64,000 nt of DNA from Bispira polyomma (Eukaryota): NCBI GenBank assembly GCA_965649765.1, contig OZ287753.1, positions 63,922,001-63,986,000 of the forward strand, read 5' to 3'. The first letter of the stretch is position 1. Each line of letters opens with the position of its first letter. The translations under genes were made by a program, and so were the position numbers. The notes beneath the pieces are model-generated. The model had not been told where the DNA came from. It worked only from the letters and a program-made list of their open reading frames with translations, and did not search any database. Of this stretch, positions 5,166 to 53,601 are shown piece by piece.

Positions 5166-6210
5166 ATGGAGCAGGTCAGTTTTCGTATCCAGACGCTTCT
5201 TGTCTGCTTCCTGGTAATCCTGAGACAGGGACACAGTAACAATGAATTCCTGAAAATCTTTGGACCTCAACAGAATCCACCAGATCCGTGTTACAATGAG
5301 CAAGGGGAACCCACCAAGTGTATCCCAGACTTTGTGAATGCAGCATTTGGCCGGAGCGTAGATGCTTCCAGTACGTGTGGGGAGCCACCCAGTCGGTACT
5401 GTAATACAGCGACCAGCGGAGGGAAAGTGGTGCGGAACTGTTTCATCTGCGATGCTAACCATCCCAAGAGACAGCACCCTCCAGCTTACCTCACGGACCT
5501 TAACAATCCTAACAACCTGACGTGTTGGATATCCGAACCCTTTGTGAACTACCAGCAGAACATCACGCTGACCCTGAGTCTGGGCAAGAAGTACGAACTC
5601 ACCTACGTCAGCCTCCAGTTCTGCTCCGCCAGACCCGACTCCATGGCCATCTACAAGAGCATGGACTACGGCAAGACCTGGGTTCCATTCCAGTTCTATT
5701 CCAGCCAGTGCGAGAAACTCTACACCAAGTCGCCGCGTGGGGTCATTACAAAGGCCAACGAACAGGAGGCCCTGTGTACGGATGCCTACAGCACTACAGA
5801 TCCCTACAGTGGGGCTAGGGTAGCCTTCAGTACCCTAGAGGGTCGACCCTCAGCCCACGACTTCGACAACAGCCCCGTGTTACAGGACTGGGTGACTGCC
5901 ACCGACATCATGGTCGTCTTTAACCGCCTCTACAGCACCCCGATCCCCCGCCAGGACAGTCGACTAGGCAGTGGTGGTGGTGATGGCGGGGCAGACAGAG
6001 AGAGCTACTACTACGCCCTCTCCGACTTTGCCGTGGGCGGACGCTGCAAGTGTAACGGACACGCCTCCAGGTGCATCTCGGACCGAGACGGGAACTTTGT
6101 GTGCGAGTGTAAGCACAACACTGACGGAGTGGACTGTGAGAAGTGCAAGCCTTTCCATTACGACAGACCCTGGGCTAGAGCAACCACCTCTGACGCCAAC
6201 GAATGTGTGG
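5166..6210 (+). CDS. NTN1: Netrin coding exon 1: signal peptide, laminin N-terminal domain VI and LE1 (V-1)
   Basis: ORF 5166-6218 is netrin-like throughout; donor G|GTAAGT at 6210/6211 after ...ANECV. Confidence 0.97.
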
Positions 6211-9200
6211 GTAAGTGATCATTACTGTCATTTACTACAAACCTCTATTATCTGAACTTCTCTTAATATGAATATATTACATTTTATGGACCATATGTTT
6301 TAATATTTATAATATTTTTTACTTATTGAATACTGCAGAACCTCTATTATCCAAACAAGATGACAAAGAGAAAGAATTTACTTTGAAAAAAATGATGTTT
6401 TAGTGTTAAATGTTAACTCAGAGAGTAAAAACTTATTGAGGTCCTTATATTCTATTTTTCATATTGGACACATTTTGGCACATATTAAATATATAATATC
6501 TGATTATATAATCCTTATATACACAGTATAGGACCATACATATATATATTACACATAAATATACCTATTAACTAGTATTTTAGTAATTTTGAATGGTTTA
6601 AATACAAAGTGCTTTTCTCTTGTTATCCCACATATATCAGAATTTCACACCCTCAGTGTGAAATCAGAACCACACATATAGGATCTTGTTGACAAAGTGA
6701 GGGCCCATTCTTTCATCTTTCTCTTCAAGCTACAATCTTCTTCATTCCCCCCTCCCTCTCTTCCACTAAAAGCCAGTGGTTTCTTCTCTGAATCTCTTGT
6801 ATACCCAAAACCTGACATTTCCTCTTCACCTGTGTTTTTACCACCTTTTTGATCAGTGTATGAAGGCTGCTGTCAAAACTACAGAAGAGTCTGGAGGTTT
6901 CTTTTTCAAGTAGGAAATCTAACAAGCAGTTTTTTTCCTCGCCTTCCTTCAAAATGAAATGCATGTGAAATCTTGCACACATCATCAACCAGTCATATGT
7001 GTGTATGTGCTTCAAATCCCAGATATATATATATATATTAATATCAAAACTGAACTACACTTTATACATCTGTGTCTAGCTTTTCGTTACTTTTTTTTAA
7101 ATAACATGCCTCTTATAATAAATTTCTACCCTCCCCCCCCCCCCCCCCCCTATAAAGTGATAGGGTGTGTAGAAAATCTGCAGAGCTAGGGAGACTCCTG
7201 AAAACCACATATGTTGTGGTTTCAATATTAAATAATAAATGCTTGTATCATTGCAAGTACACTGAAAGATTAATGCAACCAAAAAAAAACTACATTAAAT
7301 ACCTTTGATCATTTTAACTTTTAAACAAATTACTTTTGCCATTCAAGATTTTTTTTAAAACAACAGACGTTTATAGTTTGTGACAAACTTTTATAAAATA
7401 TACATACAACATAAAATCAGAAAATAAAATCTTCCAAACCTACTTATTTAAAGGTGTCATCTTCAAAAATAACCTCAGTAGTTGAATTAACTGTGATTAC
7501 AGGTGAGCTCATCAAATCTATGGGCCTGTAATTTCTTCCAGAAGACCTAATAACAAAATCCTTTTCCCCCTATTATCACCCAGTCATGAGATGACATTAT
7601 TTCTCCTTATTTTGTCTTTTTTAAACCCTTCTCACGTCCACAAATTAGTGTGGTCATGAAAACTATGTAGCTTTATACATGTATATAGATATGTGTATGG
7701 ACTATGGAGAGAGGTACACCCTTGGTACACAAGCCAGTGCAACCCTCTATGAAATTTTAATCTCTTTGAAAAATAAACAATACTTCAGACCCACTTTACG
7801 GCCAGAATTCTCTTCCTGTCATTAACCCCCTCCCCATGATATATAGAGATTTTCAAATATGCTTCAGAGGTTTTTGAATAAATAACTTTGAGTATCTCTT
7901 GAACCCAGCGGTAAACTGTACAATGTCCAGTGTAGAATGCAGTAAGGGGGTCCTCATGTTTACAAGCTTAACAGAAGATTTTTTTGTGGGGGGTTAGAGG
8001 GGGTGGGGGGTTAATTAATTGCTGAATTTAACCATCTGAATAGTAGCATTTGACTGGGGGTATGTTATTCTAGTGTAACTTTATATGGCACAAGTTTTGT
8101 GTATATGTGTGTGTATGGGCATAATTAGTACAACGTTATATACAGGCTGTTTGGGCAATATATGGGAGATTTGTGCTACTGCTGAGAAAACTACAGTATA
8201 AATTCAATTATCCGAAAATGTGCTAAATGAGGAGCAAGATTTTGTTTGGATAATAGAAGGTTCATATATACAAATTATAGAGACAAAAGGCAAAATGAAA
8301 ATTTGGGAGAGTATAAAAGTGTGTCTGTGTTCATAAAATCAAATATTTGAATAACAAGAGTTTGAGATAATAGAGGTTCTACTGTATTTTTATGGACTAA
8401 AATCTAAAACATGAAAAAAAATTAACTGTGAGAAATTCTTCTTATTCTTCCCTGTGAAATATACGCTAGTGTCCTTCGTGAACTTTACTCCTTGGAATTC
8501 TGTTGTTGTTTTTGTTCTTATAAAGTTACTAGCCATGTATACACACAGCAGTGACTAGGGACTGTTAATTAAATAATTACAACAGCCTGTGGTTGACTTG
8601 TAACACCCCCACTGGGAGATAATCTAAGACTTAATCCCATCACCCCCCCCTCTCCATTGGTGGCCTTAAAAAGGTGTATCTCTACATTTGAAGTAGTGGC
8701 ACTGACTTCACAGAGAGAGATGTGTTGTGAAGACATTTTTACCCCCCACTTGTGTATAAGGACACAGTACAAAACCTGTGAGTTATGTATTATATATAAA
8801 TACACACTTGTGTGGGGGGTTAGTCAAAATAATCACAGCTATTGACCATGAAAAAGGCTTGCTTACCAACTGTGGTGTACAATAACACACTCTGGATAGC
8901 AGTGTCTTGTCTTTTGGGATTATTATATGGTCCTGATCTATGAGAAATGCATGCATGCATTTGTGTGTGTGCGCCTGTGTTTGTAGGACAAACTTGTAAA
9001 AATTGTACACACTCCTAATTTGGCAAGAAAAATTGGGTGTGGACTGGTGAAGGAATTTTAATCCAGCACAGTCCGGTGTGTTAGCCAGATTTATACCCAC
9101 CTCACCCACCTTGTATTCTGCATGGCCCCCTATTTATATAGCACCCATTTGAAGCAAAAATCCTGTACAGAAAGTATCATTTATGATTAATCCATGCAAG

Positions 9201-12200
9201 CTTTAAAACAAAAAATTAAAAAAATCTGACAAAGTGATTGTGGTGAGTTAACAAAAGTTGTTACACCAGTGATTAGGGACTCGATTTTTATTTGTTCAAC
9301 CCTAAAAAAAAAGTCAACTACTTTTAAAACCATTCACTGGGGTTTCGGTCTTTCGGAATGTGACATTTTTTTTTTTTGTGTTAAGTACGAGTTTTGATAT
9401 ACCCCTGGTTTGTATTATCCCATATTTCCTGTAATATAAATCACGGTAAATCCTCAGTTCACGCCTGGTAGGATTCCAGTATTCACCCCCTGCCTTAATT
9501 GGAACTACAAACATTTCACATTTTTTTCATGCACCCTCCTTTATAAGCATGTTTTTACTACCACAACAGAAGTATACCACCCCATTTTAACTTTTGCCAT
9601 GTGGGGGGAAAAACTCGGGTGCACCAAAGTTTTATTAAAGAGACAGTTGACACAGGAACACGATAGTTGATTTAAGTTTGAGAGCCTTTATTATTTAAAT
9701 CAACTCTTGTACAAATGAAGGGGGTCATTTGTTAATGGTGTCATTTCTATTGGTTATTTTTCTTAGGGAGGTTATTTGACTACAAACGGATTATGATAGG
9801 GAAAATTTGGTGTAAAAGTCTGTACATGTACTGGGGGGGGGGGGGGGGGAGGGGGGAAGCTACTAGTATATATTTAGATTAGATCTATTTAAAATGAGTA
9901 GGGGGAGAGGGGGGGGTAGTCACTGCTGTGTGTAATATGTGTCTTAAGGATTCCCGTGATTTTAGAAAAAAAAAATTTTGTGTCCATTGTGATTTTTTTT
10001 TCTTGTCAATCGGCTTTAGAGCGACTTTGTTAAACTATATTATAAAAGTAAAGATCCAAATATCCCTAATCTGACGAGCTGGATAACAAACACCAAACAA
10101 TAAATACAACCACCCAAAGATATTATTGCAATCAAATATTAATGTAAAGATGCCAAATCCCATGTTTAGCTTTCTTTTAGGAAGGACAAAACACACTACT
10201 ATCTGTTACGTCTTATCTAAGCATCTATCTCACGATAACACATACATACAGATTAGTAGATAGAAGGACATGTAGGATACTCTTGATTAAGCAAATTGCC
10301 CACAAGCCAAGGGGAATGTTTGCAGACATTCTTTCCCATACTTGTATGACTGAATAAATGGTTTGAGGAGAGCAGTGCAGCAATGTGGATTGGCCATTAG
10401 GCGGAGTTCCTGAGAATAGCTACTTTCTGGCTAACCTTTCTATATACAATTTAATTCTCGGTCTTCAACAGTTCATTTTACATATAGAGTTTTATACTCT
10501 TCAGATATATTCTTATATTCAGCAACACTACACACTAATGAGTGAACAGGGCGGTGTGTAGTTTAAAAGGTCAGAGATAATCAGTATTTGATTAAAACTG
10601 TCACAGTAAAAAATGGCCTAGTCATTTGATTTCAAAAACTTTTAGACATTTGGGCATAAAATGTACCTAACTGACTTTAGACCAAATGGTTTCTTAAAGA
10701 AATGTCTCTTTGAGGTTGTTGATTCGTCAAGTAATTTAAACTAAGTAAATGTTTATAGGAAAGTGTCTGGGAAGCTTAGAGACTACTACATTTTTACCCC
10801 TATACTTATTTTCCTATCATAAAACCCCACCAAAAATGATATCACTACGGCCACTACATCTATATTACATCTTATTGACATACATACAGATTAACAAAAA
10901 ATCCGCCCCCCCCAAAAAAAAACAAAAAAAAAACAACAAAAACACACACCCTATATTGGATAAGCTTTTGTAGGCCATCCAGTCAGTGTATTTGTATAGA
11001 TTCACTTCTAAGATACACATCTATAACTGTGTACACAGGTACTCTTTCTGTATAGTATCCACTAATCTCCCCAGTAAGCTGTAGTCTGTAGGTTGTGCAT
11101 GTGTGTCTGTAATTTTGATGCTCACTTTCCTCCTTTGATGTGTTCAATCAAAGATAGAGGTGCAAATTGTCACCTATTATCACCAGCTAATAAGATGGAT
11201 GTCATTGGGCTGGCTATAGTTACAGCGGCTGGCCTTTAACTTACTCTCATCCGGTTGAAGGTTCTACACATAAACTGGTAATTCGTGGATCATTGTAAAG
11301 TCTATGTGACTAGAACGTACCCTAAGTGAAATCAATTAAGATAAGAAATGTCAATCAACATGATAAATACGAATAACGAAAAAATATTTACTGATTTCCC
11401 AAAATACATGAAGCATGATATTGTTTGATTCTTGTGGTTATCAAAAACTATATGAATTAACTTGACAGTTATAGTTAGTGTACATAATTTAGGACCCTGT
11501 AATTTAGTTTATACCATGTATTCATTTGAAATGGAATACAACCTTTTAAAAAATTATCCATTAGTGTATATTTTTAATTTTACAGAAAAAAAGATGTTAC
11601 CAACTATATTATAGATTCTAAAAACTGTTCATTGATATTTTTCCTCAATCTCTCATAACATAGATACACAAATAGAGAACAAATGTTCTGCCTCCTTCCA
11701 CTGTTCTAGTCTTCTCAAGGTTTACCAGATTCTCTGAGCAAAAGGTCCTTAGTATATATACAATGTGTAAGTTTTACTTTTGTAGTGAGATGAAGACAAA
11801 TAAAATCAGCATTCCCTACATACTCGCTTTAATTAGTAGGTTCCATATTCTTTTAAAGTTCAGCAGTTCTTCACAATACACACAGACTTGAACACAAATA
11901 TAGATTTGTCATCACAGTTTTACAAACATAGGCAGAAATTTACTGTGTACACGTTTTTTTTTACCTGCGAATCAAAAATAAAATATATTAAATAGAATTC
12001 AGAGTCGTATATAATATGAATATTTGATCAAGACATCGCATTCTAAATGCCCCTGTTTTTGCGTTAAGACTGGGAATAAGTGGGTTGGTTTTAGGTAAGA
12101 CCACAGCTGGTAGCTAATCAGTGTGTATAGCCTGATGGTAAGGTTTTCCCATAAACTACAGTCTGCATTTTTTTTTTACGATTTCTAAGATTGATGAAAT

Positions 12201-15200
12201 CCCCCCAAAAGAAGCAATTAAAATATGCCTTGAATTAATAATTTAACTTAAAAATGTTATTTAAGCAAAGTAAATTGTCTTCCAATTAGAAGAAAACATA
12301 AAAAGATAACTAGAATTATCGAAATCCTTATTAGACAGACGGATTGTTTTGTCTTGGCGAGGCTTTTTAGTACCTTTTCTTCTGCTGCACAATGAATCAG
12401 TGCTGGATTCTGAATCTATAGGCAGCCTTAGTGTATGTACACATGTATGCGGCTTGCGAAGTGCAATTTACTTCCCCCCTCCGACGCCCCCCTCTCCCCT
12501 CACGCCGCCCCCCCCTCCCCTTACTACTGAATTATCACCTTAAACAGTGCGATTTTATATTCTCATCCGATTTTTTCGGTCCTGGAGCGAAAAGTTCGCA
12601 TTCGGAAGCTGCAGATCGTGCATCCCAATTCGCAGTCTGATACATGTGTACAAATAAACAAAAGATATGAGGAGAGAAAAAATCGCAGACGCAAATCAGA
12701 TGTCTAACGTCGGGAGCCGCATACATGTGTACATACACATAGTTGAACTAGTTAAACCCTGTAACGGTATTATAGACTGAAACTCTGGCTCATTTAAAAA
12801 CCAACAAAACTATATACCTAATTCCAATAATACATAGGCTAAGTGAGACAAAGTACTGCAATTTGAATATCACGTTACAACTCGTAGCCATACGTGATAG
12901 CTAAAACAATGAAATATCAAAACATATATTATATACACATATTTTTTATATAAAGCATACTCTACTAATATTACTATAGTCTACTATACATTATACTACA
13001 GTTATTAATAACATCCGTCTGTATAGTTGGTTTACAAGACTTTTTAAAGCTACATTCTGGTGTACACAAACACCTGTTTGTTACACGTTTACCCTGACAC
13101 ACATATATATATATATATCATAAGGACACGCCTGTAGCATTGCAGTTTGCCAAAAATGGGAAAACCACAAACTCAAAGGAAAGGACGGCCACCAATGCAA
13201 TAATGTCAAAGGAGAAATGTACACTTGAAATTACAGAGATCCCGTTCTTTCAGGTTTCAACAAATATTATTTATTTGTGTAATTTTCTGTCTCATTTCAA
13301 ACTGCACTGACGTAAAAAAAAAATCAAGCATTATATTGACAAGGAACTCAAGAGGGTTATTCTATTTGGACAAGTAGGTTTAGAAATGTCCCGAGTCACT
13401 GGCTTCAAAGTCCTTTAAACTGACTGCACCCTGGTAACATATAGTGTCCTTATTGTTACATTAGTAACCAACCCAATAAACATCTGCACACTCTTACAGC
13501 CAAAGAATTCTTTTTTCTTATAAATTTTACACAAGGTAGAAATTTTTTTTTTTTGCGGCTCACTGTCACAGATTTTGTATTTTCAGAATTTTAATTCAAC
13601 ATTTCTAAATTAAGTCAATTTGTCTTTTCTAATTGTGTTTCATTGTAGACTTTAAATGTTTAAATATATCAGTAATAATAACAGTAATGCATAAACGTTA
13701 ATATTTTATGGTAATATATACTTTTGAAAGTATTGATTATTATATTTATATACCGTATATGTACTGCTCAGTAGATATTAGTGGATTATTAAAAATGTTT
13801 TATTGCAGTAAATTATAGTGAATTAATTTTATCACAATTTTGCTAATTAATAGAATACAAGTTCTGGAAATAAATGTAATTAAAAAAACTTTGTTAAGTA
13901 TCAACAAATTCATATTTAAAATAATTATAATTTTGTAAATTCTATTAATTATATAGATATTTCAACAGAGTATCAAAACCACCAGTAAATGTTTAATGTG
14001 CTTTTTTATTGGGATAAATTACTTTTCAGATGAAAAAAAAACCCAAATCAAATTGATATAACATCATCCCCCACTCCCTCCTCCCCTGTAACAATCTTTT
14101 AAATTTCACAGTCGACATATTCTCGTCATCCCCCCCCCCTCCTCTGTAAGAAGACAGTGTCTTTAAGTGACGCTCCCAACTTTGAGAAAAACAACCCCAT
14201 CAAGGACAGGGCCCAATTAACAGACTAGGTTGTAACAGCTCATTACAAAGTTAGGGCCCCAGTAATAGGGTTTCACTACTGTGCATTCCTGTCCTAGATA
14301 ATGTACCACCGTTGGCATGACAACGTATATATTGAAAGCCCCTCCCAGATTGAGATTAATGAAGGACACTATTCCTATCTTTACCCTATACTTTCAGCCT
14401 GTCAATGTAACCTCCATGCCACCCAGTGTCGTTTTAATATGGAACTTTACAAATTATCGGGCCTAAAGAGCGGAGGGGTGTGCCTCAAATGTAGGCACAA
14501 CACGGATGGCCGAAATTGCCATTACTGTAAAGAAGGCTTTTACCGCGATCCCAAGAAGCCGATGTCACATCGCAAGGCTTGTACAGGTATTTGAATAATC
14601 AGTTATTTAGGTGTTAAGTTAGATTCCCATGTCATTAACTGACTTGGTCTTGCTTTCTCTTGTCTTGCAGCGTGCAAATGTAACTTACATGCCAAGAGCT
14701 GTGAGTTCAATAAGGAACTGTATCTGCTGTCCGGACGCAATAGTGGGGGTGTGTGCCTGAAATGCAGGCATAACACCAAGGGGCGCCACTGCCATTATTG
14801 CCAAGAAGGGTTTTACCGCGATAAGCTAAAGCCTATCACTCACAGAAAAGCATGTAAAGGTAGGAGATAACACCCACCCACACAGTTTCACACAAACTGC
14901 CACCCCCTCCTTCCTGAGTGATTCAAAAGGCAGACAAGTGTGCAAACTGTGTCAAAGCTCCCATCCCTCGTCCCTGTAGAAAGGCACCTTTTAGCATTAG
15001 AAATGTATATTTTTAATTTGTTGAAAAGAAAATTTTAAAAAACCCTCTATTTTCATCTTGCTTTCATATAACTTAAATGACTTAAGAAATGTTTCTCTAT
15101 GATATTATTTTTAACCAAAGATGCAAATGCAAATTTTTTCTTTTAGACAGGAAAGTGCAAAAAAAATTAGTATTTGACCAGAAAACAGAAAGCACATATA

Positions 15201-18200
15201 TAAACATATTGTAGAAATGGAAACAAATGTATCAAGCAAAAGACATTTATAATGTTACAAAGGTGTCTGAAATCAGCCATTTCACCTGCTACTTCTTACC
15301 TCTTTTGTTTAGCTGCAACTGTTTAACATGATTATGGAATATGTACCATCACATTGTTGTCTTATCACAGGAATATTGTCTAAAATATTCTAAGTAAATA
15401 AATTTTTCAAAATCACTGAAGAGTAGTTGTACAGCTATTTCTGAAAAAATGGTATATTCGTTAATTTCGAAATTTTATGGTATATATTAACATATTATTC
15501 AACATTTATTTTGCAATTAAAATATTTTTCTTCAATTATTTAATAATTCGTAGCTTTTAGAATGGTATGGAAATAAAAGATTGAAATTTAATATTTCAAA
15601 AATGATATTTATACATAGATAAACATAACCAAAAGCCAGGAAAACGAAGGTTAAAGTTAATTGCAAAATAATTGAGTTGTGTGTACTTGTGTTGTACAAC
15701 TGAGAGATTGTGTGGTATTTTCTACAAATTGTACTTTGTCTGTCCTATAGTCCAATCTCTTTGGAGATGTGCATTTAGAATATCTTTGTAATTTGAATAA
15801 AATACCAAAACTTTATTTAATTATTAAAAATGAAAAAAAAAAAATTCTTGTTTCGATCGCATAACAAATTGGATTACTATAAAAGGATCTATAACAATTT
15901 AGACTGAGTTAGCTGTTTAATATGTTTGTTTACTGCCAGTGTCATTGTGAGTCCGTGTGTCTGTTATATGTTTTATATGTTGACATCCGTGTTAGTTAAA
16001 TAATGTGGTCTTTTTGTGAAACTGTGAGTTTCTCAGAAAACACCCTCTCATTTTCTGAGTTAGTTTATGTATCTGTATCTTGGTGAAGTGGCTGATTTAC
16101 TCTATTTCTGCCCCTACCCCTCCCCCTCCTGTGTGGTGTGTGGTGGGCCTGATATATATATACATATTGTATGCTTTTGTCTTACTAATGTCCAGCAATA
16201 TCTTCTCTATCCCCCCCTCCTTCTCCGACTTGCTTTATTCATTGTTTTAACCCCCCCCCCTTTTTTTACCTTACAGCTAAGCGCAGTAATACAGCACCTG
16301 TATATATAAATATTTTAAAAACCACTGTAACACAAGTTTTAACTAAAGACTGCACAGCGGCCAACAAAATGGCAGATTTAATAAAATGCACAAACTTACA
16401 CTTTACTAATTCACACAGGAAGCTAGATTAATTTCATTTACTTATATATATATATATATATATATATATTACGCAAGTTATAGATAAGAACAGCTTTTAA
16501 TTTTTAAAAGGTATATTGTCAACCTAATGAAAGAAGTACTTATCATTATTTATTTTAATTTTATTATATACCTTAATGTACAAAGCTTGTATAAATGATT
16601 TTGTAATATCTGGTTTTATTCAGTTTGTATATATACTTATATATATTTTATGTTGGGTATTTTTATGTTAATAGTTTTATTCAATATCTTAGCATGATAA
16701 AGGATTTTTTTTTTGTATTATAGTTTATTGTGGTATTAAACTATGTGAATGTAATGCTGTGGTATAATATACAGTGTACTTTTATTATCACATATTATAA
16801 GACACACATAATGTAGATTATTTTTTTTAAGTTTTCATTTTTAAAACTGCCAATTTACAACCAACAGTCAAAATTCTTATCAACGTAAAGCGTTTTGATA
16901 AACTCTTGTAGGTTTTTTTTGAGCGTTTCAGTATTACATACTTTATGAAAAGTGACACTTAGCTATTGAATCTCTATGAGCTGACAATGAGATGGTTATG
17001 TGGCACCTATATGTTGAATGGTCTCTGTGAGACTCTGTGAGAGTGGGTGGTACCATGACTTCTGTTTGTATTCAGACTTAGCTTCTTTCTTTCAAAAGGA
17101 TGTTTTAAGAAGAGTTTAACATTCAAACCCTAGCTAGTCACTTCACAGTTTGGTGTCTTATTATATACAGACATTCTTTGTCCAAGATCTTCTTTGTACA
17201 GTAAGAAACAGTTTTCGTACAGTTCAGTTTGTTTGTCACAAGGATTATACAAAAAACTACTAAACTAATTAAAATGAAATTTGATCAAAGTAAAATGTCT
17301 TTAATTTTGGAATGGATCTTGGCAGAAAGAAGGACTTAGGAAAAAAAATTCAGAATTACTTTTCGGCACTCTAACGCCTTAGCAGTGGTGTACACTCTAC
17401 CGAGTGCCTTTTAGATTCTCAAAACCTGGAACAAAAAAAATAGAAACCTTTAAAAGGTAGCTTTAGCATTGACCTTAGCTATTAGCTAACTCAATAATAA
17501 TTTCTCAGTAAGTATATATCATCTCAGATGATATAATACTGAAGTGTACTAGTTTACTTGACATCCTATGAATAAAGGAATAAATTTTAGGCATATTTGA
17601 CCATTAACACTTGTATTACTGGGCTAAAAGGCTTCTGAAGAAATGGTATATGAAAGACTTGCATAGAGTTTTGGCAAACATGTGTTTTCATACAGGAGTC
17701 CACATAAAAGGTGTTTGGTATTTAGTAGCTGAGATGATTTTATTAACTCTTAAAGGTTACAAGGTTAGGGTATGAAATGTCTGAAGATGTAAGAGCCAAT
17801 TAATACGACTATACACAAACTCCCTATATATTTAAAGGTATTACTTTGATTTGAGTAGATTTTTTTTTGTTAAGAGGGCAAGACCTTATTTACAAGTCAG
17901 TCACATAAATATTTACTAATAAACCTCTCTTTACAGCAGACAGATATTAGGGATTTTCTGCCTTTGTACACTGTAAGACGGGTGTTGCTTTAATAGAAGT
18001 GCATGCATGCAAATAAAGAATTCTTCAGGGGTCAAAGATCTGTGTCGGCAATGTCACAGCTCTCTCTATATATTTAAGGGGTGGAATATTGGAATGTTAG
18101 TCAGAATATAGGGGGGGGGGCTTAGTTAACAGTGTATTGTGGGCTCTTCAGGAACTGAGTATTATCTTTACCTCCTTATGTGAGATATTAAAGCGCGACT

Positions 18201-30200: not shown

Positions 30201-33200
30201 GAAAACTTGATTGTATGAACACATTTCAACTATTATCCTTAATTTGGATTTCCCCATTCTTTTATTGAGTAATGCCTCTTCTATTTTACAAATTTTCTTT
30301 TATCCAAACTATATCTTGGCTGTCTCAACATGTTCAGATAAAAGAAGTTTTACTGTATTGACCTGCTTCTGTATAGGAAATGAGTTACCTCTTTGTCTGG
30401 CTCTATATATACATATCTTTACTATAGAAGTAGAAATTTTAGCTGGAAGAAAATTGGACTAATTTACACGGCAAAAGAAAATCACGGCAATATTTTTCAC
30501 CGCTGGCTGTTTCTTTGTACAAAAATTTATACAAATTAAGATTTTCACTATTTTTACTCATTAGTTGAAAGAACTACAATAAATTCCAAGTGAAATTTCA
30601 ATTTGTATAAATTTTTATACTAAAAAATGAGCCGCCAGTAGTAAAAGTTGATTACAGAAAAGTCATACTTATATATATACTACATACAATATTATGACTA
30701 CAACTAATTGTCATTTATTTCTCTATTCTTATCTGCCCCTATCAGCCTGTGAGTGTCATCCTGTGGGCGCCCTGGGTAAGATGTGTAACCAGACGACCGG
30801 TCAGTGTCAGTGTAAAGATGGTGTGACAGGACCCACTTGTAACAGATGTAAGCCTGGCTGGCACCAGAGTCGCTCTCCAATACAGCCCTGTGTCAGTAAG
30901 TACACACACACTACTTCTTATACACTCTCTCCCTCATCCATGCCTTACTGTTTGACCTTGCCACATATAGTGTGCCTTTGACCTTTGTGATGGCCTCCTG
31001 ACAGTGTGAGTATCACATGTTTCCAGTCGGAAATTTACAAACGTAAAAAAAAGGAATTTTTGGGAGAAATTTGCTTGACACACTATCCATTTTGGAAACC
31101 AGATTAGTAGTTTTTTTGGTATGCTGTATATGTCCCATATATTATTATACAACACCTTGTATTTAACCTTTTTGGGGGTAAGAGAATTGTGTCAGTTCAA
31201 ACTATACTGGGGTATTTGAGTAGTATTTAAGTGCCGAGGCATCTGGCCCCAAAAAGATGAAATACGGTTTGTGATTTGTGAAGACCTTGCTGCCCCAGTA
31301 TCAAGTTTAAACTTTGTTATCTGTGTGTATAATGTATAAATGTTGTACAATTGCACCTTATTTTACAGTTGAGTAATTCAGTTGTTTTATACATGTTGTT
31401 AAATATTTCATAGTCTTCCTAAGTTTTACTGCTACAATTTCAACCAGCAACTTTTTCCATGATTATAAAAAAAATGAATCGACAGACTCCGTAAATAATG
31501 GTTTGATATTTAAGTTTTATCTGCATATTAAAAAATATTTCAAATCGTTGTACTGCATTGCAGTTCAATTTAATCTCAATGTTGAATGTTTAATATTTAA
31601 TATTTATAGTTAAATTAAGTGCAAATCCTTGGTGTTTTAAACACAGATCTTCTACTATATTCAATAGGTTTAACAAAATGCTGGCAGAAGTGGTCTCTTA
31701 ATTAAGTATATAGTATATAAAAGTCAGAGTTAATCATATAAATAATGTATAAACTGTATAGTGTTAGAAAGTATTGCTTTGCCTGTATGTGCTTTTTTTT
31801 GCAGTCATTTATCTGTAATTATTGATTGTTTGCATGCTTCTTGCTAATTCTGATATTTTTTCTGTATATTTGTTTATAGAAAAGCAGTTTTTTCCCCCTT
31901 TTATTTCCTTGTATAAATATGATGCATTATAGATTAGCATGGAGAAACCGGTATTGTTTGCCCCTTGCTGTTGTTTTCTCACTGGTTCTACAACTACTCC
32001 TTTACTCACCATTATACAAATGAAAGTTTCAGTAAGAGATAACAATGCTCAATTATATGACCATTAATGTCACAAATAATTTAACACCCCCATGAAGAGT
32101 CCTGGTCCAAATAAGTAATGTACCAAATTATTACATTACCATTGTTTTCTTGTGTTTTTTTGTCAAATAAAAGTCATCAGTCTGGAAAGGTTTAATTTAT
32201 ATTATAAATACCAATTTATTCACTAATAAAAAACGATGTTTTATGGGGAAAACACTACAAGATATTCATTGTAAAATGGTGTTTGGAGTAAACTGTTTTA
32301 TAACAAGGAGATAAGTTCAGTGTTTTTTTTGTTGATCCCATATACACATACATGTATTTTTTTAATTTTTTTTTATAAAAGATGAGTTTCAGTTGATTAT
32401 GAGTTGCTTTGTAAATACCCAATTTTTAAGTGTTTTCTTTTGTTCCTTTGCTTATAAAACCTTATATATGTATTGGATTATTGAAATATCTCATTATGCT
32501 TAAAACTGTTGTCAAAATGATGAATCATTACTTTATATTGGTGTTGTTTGCTTATCTTTTATAGACGATCTATCTATATCCTCATGGCTTTAAAAGTTGG
32601 GAATTTAATGAATTTTAAGCAGAGATCTTTCATAAATACAAAATATTGCAAGTGACTATTTGATTTTCATTGTTTTGTCTGTGTATGTATGTACATGTAC
32701 AATGTGTTTTTACCCCAGCTGTCATTTAATACTGTACAGTGGAACTACTGTTATCAAAACTGGTAAATCTGTTCAGATAATAGAATGTTCATCAAATAGA
32801 AAAGGTATAGAAGTGTCACTCACTAGAAACATCTACATTATATTTGATTGAAATAGAGTTAATAAAATTGAAGATTCACAAAATAGATTCTTAAATGTAG
32901 AAATAAAGTTCAAGGGCGAGTACTTTATTGGAGAATCAAGGACTGACTTACGGCGGAATAATGGACGAGGGCCGGCAGGCCCGAGTCCATTATGCTGGAA
33001 GGCTGTCCTTGATTCTCCAATAAAGTACGAGCCCGTGTACTTTATTTCTATTATAAAGACTGACAATAATATTTTTAAACCAAATAATAAGATATTTCCC
33101 AATTTACTGTGAACTATTTTTGTAGCTACTGACGGAACTATTTTGCCGTGATCTATTCTCCCAGATAAAGTACGGCTACGAATTGCGCAGTGACGGCTTT

Positions 33201-36200
33201 TGTGTTCTATGCGCATTTCCGGTCTTTGTAATAGATGATAGAGGATCTATTGTTGTATGTTGATTGTGAGGTATATTGTTATTAACGCTTAGCAGAGAAA
33301 TGATTACATGCTATACATGTGTATATATATATATATATATATACATGTATACAATGTAATCTTTAGGCAGTTTTGGCCAGTTGAGATGTGACAGTGTTTA
33401 AAATTTGATACAAATGATGACTTAGAATGTGTGTCAACACCCCAAAACTAGTGACCTTAACTTTTCATTATATATCATATAATTTTGGAAGTTGATACAT
33501 TTTGATCTTAGTTTGACCTTGGGAGTTGTTTTTAGAGGTTAAAATATATGACCCTCATGTATATGTGCTTTCAGTACCTCTGGGTTGGTTTTTTTTACAA
33601 AGATTCTTACACTTATATAAGAGTATTAGTGTCTAATGTCATGGTTCTGATCCAAATGTTTGAAAGAAGCAATGCAGTTGGCCAAAAACAAAAAAAATTC
33701 TATGATAACAGTGTAAGAATGTTTGTGAATATGGCCCTCCTAATATGGTGCTAATTTATTTATTAACAACGGTGAAGGTGTTCAAGTACCTGTATATTTC
33801 TTTTTTAAGTTCTTTTGAAGTTTCTGTTTCTTATGCTCAGCTTCCGTTTTAGCACATCCTGTCCAAGTACAAGTAAAGACATGCTTTTCTTGTAGCTCTG
33901 TATGTTGCATTGACTATTCACAAAAATGTCCTTTGTGGAGGTCACTTTTTTGTGGTAGATTGTTACAAAGATTTCGGGACAAACATTGTTTTGTTTTTTG
34001 TACAAAGAGGCAAATATATTTGTTTAAATGACAATTGCTAGCTCATTACTTTCTGGAAACTCTACAAGATCTTCTGGCATTCATGTGGCAAGGATTTTTT
34101 TTGTATTCAGTCACCAAACTTTCACTGCACCCAAAGGTGAAGAACATTCACAATGATCTCCCTAAATTGTGACTTTTGCTTTCAATTTTTAACAGAAAGT
34201 TTTAAATTTTACTTGGTCAAAAAGGAGTCAACATTCAAAAAAAATCCTTGCCTCTTCCGAACTTATAGCATGGATACCTTGTTCTTACCTAAGGCAGTGT
34301 TTTGATTTTAGGGCAATTTTATTTGTTTACAAAATACAACAAAAAAATATTCCCAATACGCATGGCTGTTTCTACTCACACTACACGTTTCAAAGGTAAG
34401 CGGCTTCCACTTTTGATTTTTTTTTGTCTTTTAGTTTGATTTCGTTTAGTTTACTAACTCCTCACTTTAAGCAGAGTAAGTTTATACTGGTACATTCTAA
34501 AAGCTGGGGCTTTCCAGGTAGTCCTACAGAAGATATGGGTACCACAGGACATTCTACGAAAGTGACTGGACCAACACTTTACCCTTTCCCTATTTCTTCT
34601 AAAGGTAAGTCTCATCACACCACCCATACACACAGCCACTCACACACACATATACATATACACTGGGGTTGGCCTTTCTATTGACAACACTGAAGATAAG
34701 TAAAATCTAGAGATATAGATCTCTTGCCTTTTAGATATACATTGTAAGTCTATTGCTGTTTTCAGTCATAGGTCCTTCCATAAGCATTCTGACGAAATCA
34801 TTTATTTTTATGGCACTAAATCTTCCTCGAAGTCCTCAATCAGAAACAAAACGTATTGGTCCTGGGTCAAACACTGGTTGTTTCTCTAAATACGGGTGTG
34901 TTCCAAAAATGAAGTGAAGAAATACTATGGTTTTTTATATGTTCAACAATCTGTGATTTAACCTGATAGCGAGTCTTCTATTATTGCACATATATGTTTC
35001 CCTTACTTAAATGAAGTAGGGCCTACACCTTCGCTCTATATACATTGTACATGTGAAAGGGTTTCCTTGAATTAGAATTTTGTTTAAAAAGTCATATTAA
35101 TATTTAGGTGTGACAGTGAAACAGCCATGCATTTCCCCTGTTACTTCGCTTCTTTTAAGAGTAGAAATACCATACTATACTGGTAAACTTTCTTTAAGTA
35201 CACGTATTACTAAAAAGGTTATAGATGTATTTGTCCGTTAATTTGATCATTTAGATACACGAAAAGAATGTGCAGCTAGGCTGGGAGTTATTGCACAAGT
35301 ATTTAGTAATGGACTATATAATTCAATTATTTCATATTTGTCTCTTTGTCCGATTTACTGATTCTTACTCTCTTTTTTGTGTAGTAAAAGGTTGAATTCT
35401 ACCACCTATATTTGAATACAATCAATGATGAGTATGCCATTAATACAACAATGATTTTCTTTATTATTACAGATGCTTTGGTGCTGTATGCAGATGTTCA
35501 TAGTCATAACAAAAACTAACTGTATTAAGTTTTATTTATCGTAATAATTAATCTTCACAGATTTCTAATTAAATGTTTCATCCGTTTCAGGACCCGACCC
35601 TGAGCCAACTCCACCTAAAGAACCTACATCGACACCTGGTAAGTTTTTATGTATAAACGTTTAGTAATCATTTAATTCTTCCATTTTTCCAAATAAACTA
35701 CAGGAGATCCTCTTTAACTGGAACCAGTGTTAGTCAAATTGGTACTTTGGGATTGAAATAAGTTGCAGTTTGTATATGAATCAGAATAAAAATGATTTAG
35801 GGATCTAACTATCATGTGAATAATAACCCCCCCAAAAAATCGAATTTATTTCATTAGAAAAACACCACTGACTCAGTTTTAAAACAAAAAGATAAAAACA
35901 GAAATAAACATTCTTTCTCTGTGTAACCTTTAACAAAAATCCGCATTACACCAAGTTCCCAAATCTGGCGTGCTATCAGGCCTTTTTCTAATTATCCGTT
36001 GATACCCAAGAGAAGACTCCCAAGATTCACACGGTGGCTCCTTTTAATCCAAAAATCCATTTTTCACAGCCATTAGAAACAAGTTTTCTCCATTAGTTAT
36101 TCTGGGACACATTCCTTTACGCAATTTATCTCTGATTTTCCGGAATACCCCAAAATTACAGTCTGCAAGAAGGAATTACCATTGGTGGTGGGTGTTAGTG

Positions 36201-39200: not shown

Positions 39201-41263
39201 CTTAATCTTTAATCTTTCAAACAGATGAAGAGTGTTGGAGCAGGAGTCCTTACCATATGTTAACAACATTACTGTGCTAACTTTAGAGGATATTTCCTGC
39301 TCTTAAAACTCTGAAAAAATAGCTCGAGAGCAAAAAAAAGAGAGGGCATAAGTTAAAAGAGTTAAAAAAAATACTCATATATTTAGTATCATATTACAAA
39401 TATGCAAGGCTTAAGTTTATGACAGTTATTTTTCAACTTTTGTACAAATCTGTTTTAAGTATAATTATCCATATAATAGTATATATACTCGTATAATCAG
39501 AAACTTAGTACAATACTTCAGTTTAAGGACATCTATATATATAATCTTTAAATGTAAAAGTAGAGTTATGTGATAAAAAAATATATAATATGAGTATAAT
39601 TGCTTTTTCAAAAATCATTATAATGGACCAAGTACTTATACAGCCTTGATTAAATAATGTCTTAAAAACTTTACATGAAGCAAATTATAATGCTCACTTT
39701 AAGTTAAGTTAAAAACATAATGTACACACACCATGTAATTGTCAAAGATTTGAAGAGTTCTATAAAAGCTGATGATATATATTTAAAAGACAGATCAGAG
39801 CAAGTGAAGATAGAATTTTGTAACATTTTGTACCATCCTTTTCAGAAATGTACACCTTTAGTTGCGATAGTGCGCTCATTATATTAGTTTTGAAAGTGTT
39901 GCTGTAGGTATCAAATTCAGCGTCCCATTGACTTGTAATAGAACGACTATATTTACCAAATGTGGACAATTTACATTTAAACTTTCTGTGTAATTTTAGG
40001 AACAGTTTACAAGTTATTGGTGTGGGGGTGTACAATGATTTCACTTTGGGAATGAGAGATAGAACTAACTTAATGAAATCATCCTTAATAAATTAGATAT
40101 AATACCATAAAATCGTAAGATAGAGATACAACCTATGAACTGGGGTTGATAAATTTACTACTTGTTTATTAACTTAATTAATAAGACCTTGTGGCTAATA
40201 GGCATGACATTGTAAATTTAAATCTCATATGATTGATTACACGTCTTCATTTGTCACAATAATTTGACATCACTATTCTACATGTCATGCAGTAGTAGTC
40301 TACCCTTTGGGATTATGTAAAAGCAGTCTCTTTCTTTAAGTTTGATGGGCGGACTTTAACATGTATATTTTCTGGTTGCATATTCTTTTTAACAGTAACT
40401 TACCAGTTGGATTACATACATTTTGTAACAATTTTACATTTCTTTCCTTTTACAGATGAATGTCGAAAATGCAAGAAAAAGAGCCGACGTATGAATGTCA
40501 AGACTTACTGCAGCCAAGACTTTGGTAAGAATAGGAAATAGTTCTTACCAGCTTTCTCTTCAGTTGAAGAGGCTAATTTTACTGATATATAGTAGAAGTT
40601 AACTCAAAGTAAAACCAAACCCTAAACATTCGATCTATACATTCCAGTCGAATGCACACGGTTGTATGTAAGCTCATGTATATCTTAAAAACAGATATAT
40701 TTTTTTAAAACAGCAAGATAAAATTAAGTTTTTTATCTCTTGGGAAACAGTTACAACAAACGTGTTCTACTTGAAACAAATTCTAGTTAACAGGTTCAAT
40801 TTCACTTTAGAAATGTAGCAATGGGAGACCTAAAAATAACTTCCTACTTAACCAGTGATTCCAGTAATTACAGTTCTACTAAAAAGGGATTTAACTGTAT
40901 ATAAATATAATATATTTTGGTTATATATTTTCAGCCATCCAAGCAGACATTGTAAAGAGGGAGACGAGAGGGACGTATGTCAAGTTCACAGCCAACATCC
41001 TGAAAGTCTACAAAAACAGTGGTGCCAGTAAGATCCGGCGCGGGGAGACCGATTTCTGGGTGTCGCTAGAAGACCTCTCCTGTAAGTGTCCCAAGATACG
41101 ACTCAAACGTAGATACCTCATCATCAGCCAGAACAGCAAGAGTGCCAACAGGATAGGCTTCACGCTAAGTCGCAAAAGTAAAGTACTGGCCTGGAAGGAT
41201 CGCTGGGACAGTCGGATACGAAAGTATCAGAGGAGTGAAAAGTACGGGAAGTGTTACAACTAA
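5166..41263 (+). CDS. NTN1: Netrin (secreted axon-guidance cue; laminin VI - LE1/LE2/LE3 - C345C/NTR). Spliced CDS: 5166-6210, 14398-14586 and/or 14671-14859, 30746-30895, 35591-35638, 40456-40524, 40935-41263; 609 aa with one LE2 exon, 672 aa with both
   Basis: Signal peptide, [55 protein letters not shown], the LE repeats and C-terminal CKCPKI are all netrin hallmarks. All introns are GT-AG phase 1 and join in frame. Confidence 0.96.
8192..8386. mobile_element. Tc1/mariner-type MITE, family A (TA-CAGTAGAACCTCTATTATC termini)
   Basis: Terminal inverted repeats tacagt...attatccg / gataatagaggttctactgta with TA flanks; multiple copies in the window. Confidence 0.7.
12431..12738. mobile_element. 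308-bp non-autonomous DNA transposon with perfect 24-bp TIRs
   Basis: GTGTATGTACACATGTATGCGGCT at 12431-12454 and its exact reverse complement at 12715-12738; GC/CpG-rich interior. Confidence 0.8.
14398..14586 (+). CDS. NTN1: Netrin LE2 (V-2) exon, copy A: [63 protein letters not shown]
   Basis: Acceptor ctttcag| at 14397, donor ACAG|gtattt at 14587; 189 nt, phase 1-1, 8 conserved Cys. Confidence 0.93.
14671..14859 (+). CDS. NTN1: Netrin LE2 (V-2) exon, copy B: [63 protein letters not shown]
   Basis: Absent from the ORF track, translated by hand. Strong polypyrimidine tract with ttgcag| at 14670, donor AAAG|gtagga at 14860; 189 nt, no stops, 8 Cys. Confidence 0.92.
24682..24862. mobile_element. 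Tc1/mariner-type MITE, family B
   Basis: cagttgaaccctcttaa ... ttaaaaggggtttgact termini; related to 49740-49917. Confidence 0.6.
25618..25816. mobile_element. MITE family A copy
   Basis: tagaaactctattatctgaac ... gttcggacattagagtttcta inverted termini. Confidence 0.65.
28781..28990. mobile_element. MITE family C copy (opposite orientation)
   Basis: agtgtaaggaatcta...tttgccacc ... gtggcaaattttagatttctta. Confidence 0.7.
29573..29745. mobile_element. MITE with TACTGTAAATTC terminal inverted repeats
   Basis: tactgtaaattct at 29573 and agaatttacagta ending at 29745. Confidence 0.6.
30164..30357. mobile_element. MITE family A copy
   Basis: tacagtagaacctctat ... gataaaagaagttttactgta. Confidence 0.7.
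30746..30895 (+). CDS. NTN1: Netrin LE3 (V-3) exon: [50 protein letters not shown]
   Basis: Acceptor atcag| at 30745, donor A|gtaagt at 30896; 150 nt, phase 1-1. Confidence 0.95.
32898..33050. repeat. 153-bp near-perfect palindrome with GGCC-GGCA-GGCC apex, probably part of a foldback non-autonomous DNA element extending to about 33240
   Basis: Arms gtactttattggagaatcaaggac / gtccttgattctccaataaagtac and ataatggac / gtccattat are exact reverse complements. Confidence 0.8.
34530..34604 (+). CDS. Candidate alternative linker exon of netrin ([25 protein letters not shown]); alternative in-frame acceptor gives start 34518
   Basis: Perfect donor AAG|GTAAGT at 34604/34605 in phase 1. Two frame-preserving AG acceptors (34517, 34529) with weak pyrimidine tracts. 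Thr/Pro/Ser-rich content matches the linker. Confidence 0.45.
35591..35638 (+). CDS. NTN1: Netrin 48-nt Pro/Thr-rich linker exon ([16 protein letters not shown])
   Basis: tttcag| acceptor, CTG|gtaagt donor, phase 1-1; occupies the position of the V-to-C linker. Confidence 0.85.
40456..40524 (+). CDS. NTN1: Netrin C345C domain first exon ([23 protein letters not shown])
   Basis: Long pyrimidine tract with tacag|, donor TTTG|gtaaga; CxxC...YC..DF pattern of the NTR domain start. Confidence 0.92.
40935..41263 (+). CDS. NTN1: Netrin last coding exon (C345C/NTR domain, [10 protein letters not shown]...KYGKCYN*)
   Basis: tttcag| acceptor at 40934; open frame continuing into ORF 41060-41263 with DLSCKCPKI and RYLII; stop TAA. 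Confidence 0.94.
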
Positions 41264-51195: not shown

Positions 51196-53601
51196 CTAAA
51201 CATGTGGGTTAATGCCTGTTGGTGCAATAGTAGGGAAGGCCCAAATATAGTACATTTCCTGTCGTTTGCGTTTCTGTGTACTATTTGGGTCTTCTGTGTG
51301 GCCTAGCCATTGCAGTACACTAAACTCCATGTCTCTAACAGTATGTTGGTTAGTACTGTAATGTCTGGACACTGGGATCAGTTTATTCTGACCAGGTTTA
51401 GTGACACTTGCTCTATGTTCATACATTCTGTTTCTAAGGGGTCTTTTAGTCTCCCTTATGTACTGTAATCCACATTTTTTGCATGTGATTACATAAATGA
51501 CATTCTTGAGTTCACAAGTAAGTCTGGGATTAGGTGGAATAGATATGCATTTGAACTGCTTATTGGTGTGGTGGCTGATGATATGATCCACTTTTTTTAT
51601 GAGTGGACAATAAGTACATTTTCCAAGTCTTGTGCAAACTGTGGGTATAGTTTTAATAGTTGTACTGTTTACTGGAGGGTAGCAAATCTTAGAACTTGAT
51701 AATTGGTCCCTGAGGTTTGGTAATCTCCTGTGACCTATTATGGGAGGTTCAGTGAAGATATTGGCAAGGCCATCAGTATTCTGGATGATGTTCCAGTTTT
51801 TGTTGATTATTTCCCTGATGTTTGGGTTATTTGGGTTGTACTGAGTTACCATGACAGGGTTGTCCGTCACTGGTTTGGTGGTTTTTTGTAGGAGTTCATC
51901 TTGGGTGAATTGAGATGCCCTTTTATAATGTTTGGTGAGATTCTGTTTGGAGTAGCCTCTAGCCAAATAGAACTTAGTGAGATTTTGGGCATTTTGCTCA
52001 AAGTCAACGTCTAGGGTACAGACCCTTCTGAGACGAAGATATTGTCCATAAGGTCCTTTTGATAGGGTGACCTTTGGGTGGGCTGAGGTGTGATGGAGGT
52101 ACAGGTGGGTATCTGTAGGTTTGGTGAATAGTGTTGTGATTAGGTCCCTGTTTGGGCCTAATTTAACAGTTGTGTCTAAGAAATTAATGGTGTGGTGATT
52201 GTATTCATGAGTGAATTTGATGGTTGGGTGGATGGAGTTTAGATACTCAAAAAATTGTATGAGCGAATTTTCTCCATGTGTCCAGATCATGAATATGTCA
52301 TCAATAAATCTCTTCCACACAAATGGTTTAAGGGGGTAATTTTTTATGGCTTTGGTTTCGAACCTGTCCATAAAAATATTGGCATAATTTGGGGCCAAGG
52401 CAGTACCCATTGCTGTGCCTCCTATTTGGAGGAAGTGGTCTCCATTAAACTCAAAGTTCATACTATGGAGTACTAATTTCAAGAGATCCAAGATGTATTT
52501 GGCTATTGGGGACTTGGTGGGGTCCTTCCTTAATTGGTCTGCTACAGCATTAATACCTTCATTATTTGGTATGTTGGTATAGAGAGAGGACACATCAAGT
52601 GTGACTAGAAGTGATCCTTCAGGAATTGGGCCTAAGTCCTTTATTTTGTGAATGAAATCTTGGGTGTCTCTGATGTAAGACTTGGTAAGGGGGACATATT
52701 TCTTAATATGCTCATCCACAAATTTGCTGATTCTGCAAGTAGGGTGGTTTACAGAACTACAAATAGGTCTGCCAGGTGCATTCTTCTTATGAATTTTTGA
52801 CAAGAGGTAGAATCTACCTTCAGTACAGTTTTTTGGTGTCAAGTATTCGAAGTTGTCCTCTGTGATCAACTTTGAGTTCCTTAGCTTGGTCAAGGTTTCA
52901 GTAACTTGATCAGAGATTTTATCTGTTATGTCAGTTTGGTTCCTGACATAAAAGTTGGTGTCTGACAGTTGCCTGTATCCTTCCCTTAGGTAATCAGTGC
53001 TGTTTAGCACTACCACTGCTGATCCTTTGTCAGCCTTTTTGATGACGACATCAGCATTATTGGCGAGTTCTTTAAGCCCAAGGAATTGTTCTTTGGTCAA
53101 GTTTTTGGTTCTAGGAGTTTTTACCTTACTTTTGAGTAAGTTCATTTTAAATGCTCTCTGAAAAATCTCTAATGACGTATGCACATTAGAGGGTTTCCAG
53201 GTGCTTTTTTCTCTGAAACGTTTATGAATTTCATTGAAAGGGTTTTCATTTACCTCCAGGTTGGAGGCAAGGAATTGTACTAATTCAAGGTCATGTTCAC
53301 TTAGGTGACTGAACATTTGGTTGTCCGAATGGATATGGAATCTGAGGCATAGCCTTCTGTAAAAGTCCTTGAAGTCATACCAGATTTGTGACTTGTTACA
53401 TGGTCCAGGGGTGGGACAAAATATGAGACCTTTTTCAAGTGCACTGATTTGATGGTCAGTGAGACAAGTGTTGGATAGGTTAATGACAGTGTGGCCCAAG
53501 AGGCTTTCCATTTTATGACCTTTTGGAAGCATGCCTGGTGAGACAGTAGGTGCTTCCAATTTAATTTGGAGCAGTTGTGATGCATAGTTTTTGTCTTGCA
53601 T
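51196..53601 (-). CDS. Penelope-like reverse transcriptase - Cys linker - GIY-YIG endonuclease (801 aa)
   Basis: VINLS, KKADKG, KIHK..PGRPI, TLDVSSLYTNIP, GTAMG, RFIDD, FLD, KPTD; CxxxxxCxxC linker; NVIYVITCKKC..QYIRET..R..EH (GIY-YIG with Gly-to-Arg). Confidence 0.96.
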   Translation of the reverse strand: MQDKNYASQLLQIKLEAPTVSPGMLPKGHKMESLLGHTVINLSNTCLTDHQISALEKGLIFCPTPGPCNKSQIWYDFKDFYRRLCLRFHIHSDNQMFSHLSEHDLELVQFLASNLEVNENPFNEIHKRFREKSTWKPSNVHTSLEIFQRAFKMNLLKSKVKTPRTKNLTKEQFLGLKELANNADVVIKKADKGSAVVVLNSTDYLREGYRQLSDTNFYVRNQTDITDKISDQVTETLTKLRNSKLITEDNFEYLTPKNCTEGRFYLLSKIHKKNAPGRPICSSVNHPTCRISKFVDEHIKKYVPLTKSYIRDTQDFIHKIKDLGPIPEGSLLVTLDVSSLYTNIPNNEGINAVADQLRKDPTKSPIAKYILDLLKLVLHSMNFEFNGDHFLQIGGTAMGTALAPNYANIFMDRFETKAIKNYPLKPFVWKRFIDDIFMIWTHGENSLIQFFEYLNSIHPTIKFTHEYNHHTINFLDTTVKLGPNRDLITTLFTKPTDTHLYLHHTSAHPKVTLSKGPYGQYLRLRRVCTLDVDFEQNAQNLTKFYLARGYSKQNLTKHYKRASQFTQDELLQKTTKPVTDNPVMVTQYNPNNPNIREIINKNWNIIQNTDGLANIFTEPPIIGHRRLPNLRDQLSSSKICYPPVNSTTIKTIPTVCTRLGKCTYCPLIKKVDHIISHHTNKQFKCISIPPNPRLTCELKNVIYVITCKKCGLQYIRETKRPLRNRMYEHRASVTKPGQNKLIPVSRHYSTNQHTVRDMEFSVLQWLGHTEDPNSTQKRKRQEMYYIWAFPTIAPTGINPHV

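Follow-up and report, generated by a model that had tools for sequence, protein, structure and literature searches.

An ancient tandem pair of netrin LE2 exons in Spiralia, probably used as alternatives in Bispira polyomma

Netrins of the netrin-1/UNC-6 family (netrin-1/3/5, Drosophila NetA/NetB and UNC-6) carry a laminin N-terminal (LN) domain, three laminin-type EGF (LE) repeats and an NTR domain in each transcript, and the gene described here has the same layout. Whether a netrin attracts or repels in flies, nematodes and vertebrates is explained mainly by the receptors of the responding cell. Elsewhere in animal genomes, duplicated exons can be spliced as mutually exclusive alternatives; alpha-tropomyosin exons 2/3 and Dscam exon 17 are reportedly pairs of this kind, with steric enforcement. 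Known netrin-1/UNC-6 members have one LE2 exon, whereas the gene of Bispira polyomma has two alternative LE2 exons, here called A and B.

We analyzed the window that contains this gene, a 64,000-nt stretch of contig OZ287753.1 (positions 63,922,001 to 63,986,000, forward strand; assembly GCA_965649765.1), and compared it with netrin loci, proteins and contigs from public databases. We consider it very probable that one ancient LE2 duplication has been kept as mutually exclusive exons, with exclusion mainly by a short intron and with modules that diverged in the receptor loop.

Gene structure and the LE2 exon pair

The exon chain was mapped exon by exon by tblastn with homologues and by Pfam. 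Features are given in window coordinates; L101 is the locus of the closest relative.

5166..6210, + strand: netrin exon 1, with the start, the Laminin_N (VI) domain and LE1; phase-1 donor; Pfam Laminin_N and EGF_laminin; top matches are netrins
14374..14397, + strand: exon A acceptor region; 24 nt the same in L101, with the ending TACTTTCAG common to distant loci
14398..14586, + strand: LE2 exon A, of the M14, K18, N39 type; ancestral loop-b helix kept
14587..14670, + strand: A-B intron, 84 nt; conserved block at about 14617-14646, candidate branch adenines at 14638 and 14642, TTGTCTTGCAG acceptor in 7 loci
14671..14859, + strand: LE2 exon B, of the K/R14, L18, H39 type
30746..30895, + strand: LE3 exon, presumed constitutive (homologue tblastn, Pfam)
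35591..35638, + strand: probable 48-nt proline-rich linker exon, inferred from good splice sites and from closing the length gap relative to homologues
40456..40524, + strand: first NTR-domain exon (homologue tblastn)
40935..41263, + strand: last coding exon, NTR/C345C and stop (Pfam NTR, E 1e-20)

The domain order LN (VI), LE1-3, NTR is present in these exons, as judged by exon-by-exon Pfam and homologue tblastn. By arithmetic that takes in the probable 48-nt linker exon, a transcript with a single LE2 would encode 609 aa, which is a usual length for a netrin, and one that includes both copies would encode 672 aa. Exons A and B are 189 nt each, phase 1-1, bordered by AG on the 5' side and GT on the 3' side, and separated by an 84-nt GT..AG intron. 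They encode the same residue at 46/62 internal codons (47/63 with the junction alanine), 25 of the 46 residue-identical codons differ synonymously, all eight cysteines align and there are no stops; the layout is as the original prediction described it. Both exons match the laminin EGF domain in Pfam. Searched against solved structures in the PDB, exon A matched netrin-1 LE2 at E about 1e-30 and netrin-4 at 8e-17. These matches classify the gene as netrin-1/UNC-6 type, closer to netrin-1 than to netrin-4 or laminin. The genome has one netrin-1 locus (a single strong copy of exon 1), one DCC/neogenin-like locus and one UPA-domain (UNC5-like) locus, and a tree of the exon-1 protein places the Bispira netrin among non-mollusc lophotrochozoan netrins, loosely with annelids.

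Mis-assembly of the exon pair is excluded because contigs from three public runs (one study, possibly the source sample) cover the stretch intact, in one unspliced piece and with no differences. The same runs were considered as RNA evidence for B. polyomma and set aside, the contigs being unspliced DNA without exon joints.

Beyond the coding exons, intron 1 (window 6586-13534) shares many non-coding blocks with L101 at 79-90% identity, for example 9348-9793, 11114-11200 and 13147-13534, which we regard as candidate netrin enhancers. Downstream of the gene lie two reverse-transcriptase ORFs, at 51196-53601 (-) and 56580-58877 (+), the second of which has an endonuclease domain and is LINE-like.

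Age, spread and constraint of the pair

The original prediction had called the duplication old and under purifying selection, and had proposed to date it by homologue search. We searched with exon A for read-through ORFs with two LE2 modules, fetched the loci and added a metagenome scan. A-then-B order was found at 13 genomic loci, the Bispira window included and some of them near relatives of each other, with A-B introns of 45, 46, 49, 51, 57, 69, 75, 76, 78, 79, 84, 99 and 129 nt. The pair is also present in L101, whose exon 1 protein is 89% identical. Modules of the A and B types, with matching diagnostic residues, occur in annelids, molluscs (snails, clams), a brachiopod, a nemertean and rotifers, a Spiralia-wide spread that the original prediction had not recognized. 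Among 14 pairs of known order, A resembled A and B resembled B in 84/91 species comparisons. In a quick tree, 25/26 B modules fell into one group (SH-aLRT 93) that included the rotifer B and one outgroup row; A modules were mostly grouped but did not form one clade in this weakly resolved, 62-column tree, and the divergent pair L017 clustered by species. No second LE2 copy was found in the sampled arthropod or deuterostome netrins, whose isoforms share a single LE2, or in the flanks (up to 1.5 kb) of single-exon loci with an outgroup-type LE2. No flatworm, cephalopod or chaetognath was identified among the matches.

The simplest reading of these sequence patterns would be a single duplication before rotifers and lophotrochozoans split, a divergence that took place more than 500 million years ago. 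Repeated, independent duplications in separate phyla followed by convergent substitutions would accommodate the short alignment, the absence of a single A clade and the clustering of the L017 pair by species, but order, diagnostic residues and acceptor motifs are all the same across loci, and the sampled arthropod and deuterostome proteins and the single-exon flanks up to 1.5 kb contain no second copy; we give such convergence little credence. With one duplication as the preferred reading, the exon pair is a candidate molecular synapomorphy joining rotifers with lophotrochozoans.

Both copies have been held by selection. Against L101, exon A gives dN 0.021 and dS 0.45 and exon B gives dN 0.007 and dS 0.30; together with the concordance and the tree across phyla, these values bear out an old duplication under purifying selection. 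Decay of one copy in relatives, which the original prediction had named as the contrary outcome, was not seen, dN against L101 being low in both copies. Synonymous sites of the LE2 exons are more constrained than those of exon 1, with a synonymous divergence from L101 of 0.29 in A+B vs 0.68 in exon 1 (Fisher p about 1e-9). The constraint reaches into the flanks: relative to L101, nothing has changed in the 24 nt that precede acceptor A or in the final 15 nt ahead of acceptor B, a 30-nt block spanning the candidate branch points is largely identical, and distant loci share the acceptor endings TACTTTCAG (A) and TTGTCTTGCAG (B). In regulated alternative exons, silent and flanking sites are expected to be more constrained than usual. 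Three other readings, namely that one of the copies is decaying into a pseudo-exon, that the pair arose in assembly, or that it was duplicated recently in this species alone, are already refuted by the low dN of both copies against L101, by the presence of the pair in raw-data contigs and in other spiralian phyla and, for a recent duplication, by saturation of A vs B at synonymous sites (pS 0.81), and we assign them a negligible probability.

One group of metagenome host loci departs from the A-then-B order. In L034, L042, L047, L071 and L086, LE1 is followed directly by B; in L098, of the same host group, A is followed directly by LE3, and a third B-like type occurs in the same samples (L085/L092/L095). 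These samples probably come from gutless clitellate worms. The arrangement fits a split of A and B between duplicate genes in this host group, as far as the loci can be read; alternatively, the order may be swapped to B-A in one gene. In leeches, two netrins that differ in expression and activity arose by a clitellate or leech duplication (bioRxiv 10.1101/803353).

Either-or use and how double inclusion may be prevented

The original prediction weighed mutually exclusive use against a netrin with four LE repeats, and isoform pairs and spliced contigs, all from relatives, come down on the side of exclusivity. Equal-length annotated isoforms whose difference is confined to LE2 were found in eight species: Owenia fusiformis, Littorina saxatilis, Lineus longissimus, Lingula anatina, Rotaria socialis, Mizuhopecten, Argopecten and Pecten. 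The isoforms are thus already present, unremarked, in automated annotations. For one bivalve-like species, intron-free contigs from closely numbered runs contain B in SRR34486198 and A in SRR34486201 and SRR34486192; the A and B contigs differ at 66/1725 coding bases, all within the 189-nt exon. The run-to-run difference may reflect tissue regulation or the path chosen by the assembler. Isoforms of Lineus, Lingula and a scallop (P0285/P0422, P0306/P0425 and P0506/P0500) also differ by 13-17 aa outside LE2, which suggests a second optional small exon that possibly corresponds to window 35591-35638.

Two LE2 modules occur together in 13/285 retrieved proteins longer than 480 aa, and all 13 are bdelloid rotifer gene models. 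In these annotations (P0283, P0284, P0409 and related), four-LE models stand beside A-only and B-only models of the same species, and they may represent real double inclusion or prediction errors. The other joined A-B case is a Plakobranchus (sea slug) fragment, itself an automated model. No A+B protein was found in the RefSeq/GenBank isoform sets of Owenia, Littorina, Lineus, Lingula, Dreissena, oysters and scallops. Because the database isoforms come from automated annotation and rare forms are lost during contig assembly, both exons may still be included together at a low level.

Routine inclusion of both exons would yield a 672-aa, four-LE netrin whose stalk is longer and which carries two heparin/UNC5 sites. 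Such a product is permitted by a reading frame that survives double inclusion, by the canonical splice sites of both exons and by introns of 99-129 nt at two loci, long enough for splicing, and the bdelloid models and the Plakobranchus fragment do join A to B. Against it stand the lophotrochozoan isoform sets, which lack A+B, the single copy in each spliced contig, and the 45-51 nt introns at four loci, which are too short for a branch point to lie more than 50 nt from the donor. We regard routine double inclusion as improbable; the four-LE form would be a minor or lineage-restricted product at best, or else an error of gene prediction. Either-or splicing in B. polyomma itself is inferred by homology with these relatives.

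In each netrin mRNA, exon 1 would accordingly be spliced to one of the two LE2 exons and that exon to LE3, producing two 609-aa, three-LE netrins in which LE2 is the sole difference. The symmetric phase 1-1 exon would have been duplicated in tandem once, in the stem of Spiralia, and the pair presumably kept since then as mutually exclusive exons. Double inclusion is in frame, so nonsense-mediated decay is unable to enforce exclusivity. Steric interference, in which the branch point lies less than about 50 nt from the donor, is among the mechanisms described for human exon pairs (PMC5740500). It fits our loci best among those mechanisms because the A-B intron stays below 130 nt while neighbouring introns are kilobases long, a situation that resembles OGDH (PMC7969005), and it fits most introns, not all. 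By motif scan alone, a candidate branch point less than 50 nt from donor A is possible or forced at 8 loci. In the Bispira window the candidate adenines at 14638 and 14642 lie 52 and 56 nt from donor A, and the window joins L017 and L076 in a borderline class (52-59 nt; motif scan). In L101 and in the Littorina-like snail L015 the candidates lie beyond the limit of about 50 nt, at 67-71 and 82-88 nt, respectively. The steric hindrance put forward in the original prediction is therefore upheld in part: in most orthologous introns the candidate branch point is no more than about 56 nt away from donor A, and those of L101 and the snail do not follow this pattern. Because the window distances are borderline and two loci exceed the limit, cis-regulation probably contributes. 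Double inclusion would then be blocked at the RNA level, mainly by the very short A-B intron with its branch point too near donor A, assisted by conserved cis-elements that lie at the two acceptors and within A and B themselves.

Several candidate elements were examined. Hairpins within the A-B intron were no stronger than in shuffles and were not conserved. A stretch of 13 nt that lies 137 nt ahead of exon A and matches L009 was rejected as a regulatory element, since it is missing from L101 and most other loci. Farther downstream, intronic positions 17872-17901 and 17960-17982 are complementary to the exon B acceptor together with its pyrimidine tract and branch point (21 bp, one bulge, -29 kcal/mol). 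The segment 17872-17901 lies inside a block conserved in L101, where the pairing is weakened or broken. A docker/selector role for pairing of 17872-17901 with 14638-14659 is at most a weak lead: its energy equals that of the best chance duplexes of other acceptors, and it is broken in L101.

LE2 divergence, receptor contacts and known systems

Matching to structures sets LE2 position 1 at residue 341 of full-length netrin-1, so that positions 8, 9, 11, 14 and 18 are R348, R349, R351, M354 and K358. LE2 is the heparin site and is needed for UNC-5 repulsion, and R348D/R351D removes DCC site 2 (PMC10871540); RRxR and RH-HR bind glycosaminoglycans as heparin sites (PMC9984387). The loop-b helix contacts UNC5B Ig2 (PMC13759497). 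In the same study, the UNC5B-blocking antibody binds less well to the K358L mutant, and the authors call K358 critical for UNC5B binding, in a sentence that is ambiguous on which binding was measured (PMC13759497).

Single-copy LE2 modules of outgroups have M14, K18, H39 and RRCR/RKCR. A copies have M14 (12/20), K18 (9/20) and N39 (16/20), with Q/K at position 9, and B copies have R9 (13/20), K/R14 (18/20), L18 (14/20) and H39 (15/20). These residues are the prevailing states and are not universal: K14 occurs in A of scallop and Lingula, and Q18 in snail B. Positions 9, 14, 18 and 23 fall within a 17-residue stretch, residues 348-364, the loop-b element. In Bispira, the RRxR at 348-351 is mostly lost (14400-14432 and 14673-14705), reading T-Q-C-R in A and K-S-C-E in B; L101 has KSCQ, and RRCR is kept in most other spiralian B copies. 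This loss in both copies is a local divergence and no ground for excluding the gene from the netrin family.

The two modules appear to have diverged reciprocally in the loop-ab/loop-b region for heparan sulphate, UNC5 and DCC site 2. A would have kept the ancestral M354/K358 helix, usually lost R349 and changed H379 to N; B would usually have kept RRxR and H379 and acquired K/R354 and L358. Because the most consistent A/B differences sit in the UNC5B-contact stretch and most B copies have L358, we think that the two isoforms probably engage UNC5 or heparan sulphate differently, in a direction that sequence does not fix, and they may be used in different tissues or stages. We infer, as the original prediction did, a switch in guidance specificity, and the location of the fixed differences strengthens this reading. 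A competing account concerns this functional step only: splicing would be either-or but the modules near-equivalent, and the pair retained because its expression is partitioned or its regulation entrenched, not for its receptor chemistry. A and B are indeed alike in cysteines, loop-cd heparin residues and net charge, and some lineages have exchanged or lost diagnostic residues, yet the same reciprocal substitutions recur from rotifers to annelids at the receptor-contact loop, and position 18 is K in 15/16 outgroup netrins but L in 14/20 B copies; we consider near-equivalence unlikely, if worth keeping in mind. A bolder version of functional divergence, which we hold tentatively and with some doubt, is a receptor-selectivity switch more than 500 million years old, in which LE2-A (K358 helix) and LE2-B (a natural K358L, with K/R354), chosen under regulation, would differ in UNC5 (repulsive) vs DCC-only signalling or in heparan-sulphate-driven assembly, and in which clitellate annelids would have hard-wired the choice by splitting A and B between duplicate genes.

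An either-or exon may let one gene make two guidance signals. If it does, a ligand-side switch in the UNC5/heparan-sulphate module, conserved throughout an animal superphylum, would add a second control layer that flies, nematodes and vertebrates appear to lack. In the A/B pair, nature moreover offers variants at R349 and K358, positions that structural biologists have altered deliberately, and expression studies of spiralian netrins with shared-region probes would have pooled two products.

In our literature search, which covered few subscription journals, we found no description of the netrin LE2 exon pair, in agreement with the original prediction, which knew of none; the parts consulted of two netrin reviews (PMC10084454, PMC6408995) describe no such LE2 splicing. 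Mutually exclusive duplicated exons are known; their occurrence in the receptor-binding module of netrin, across Spiralia, appears to be new. The Bispira LE2 modules are 75-84% identical to many netrin-1-type LE2 modules. As far as the consulted part of one review goes, isoforms of netrin-G1 and netrin-4 resemble the Bispira netrin in alternative splicing within the LE region, but they involve skipping or insertion in independently evolved netrin groups, whereas duplicated LE2 modules are exchanged in Bispira (PMC6408995). Leech netrin-1 and netrin-2 likewise are two annelid netrin products with different expression and activity, but they come from separate genes (bioRxiv 10.1101/803353). Dscam1-type docker/selector clusters have conserved long-range pairing with compensatory changes, which our pairing tests did not support for the netrin pair. 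A parallel in architecture is OGDH 4a/4b, which like the netrin pair consists of equal-length tandem homologous exons with in-frame double inclusion and a long-kept short intron (PMC7969005). Compared with the OGDH, tropomyosin and Dscam pairs, the branch points of netrin are motif-predicted and lie beyond 50 nt in two orthologues, and the swapped module sits in a secreted guidance ligand, not in an enzyme or receptor.
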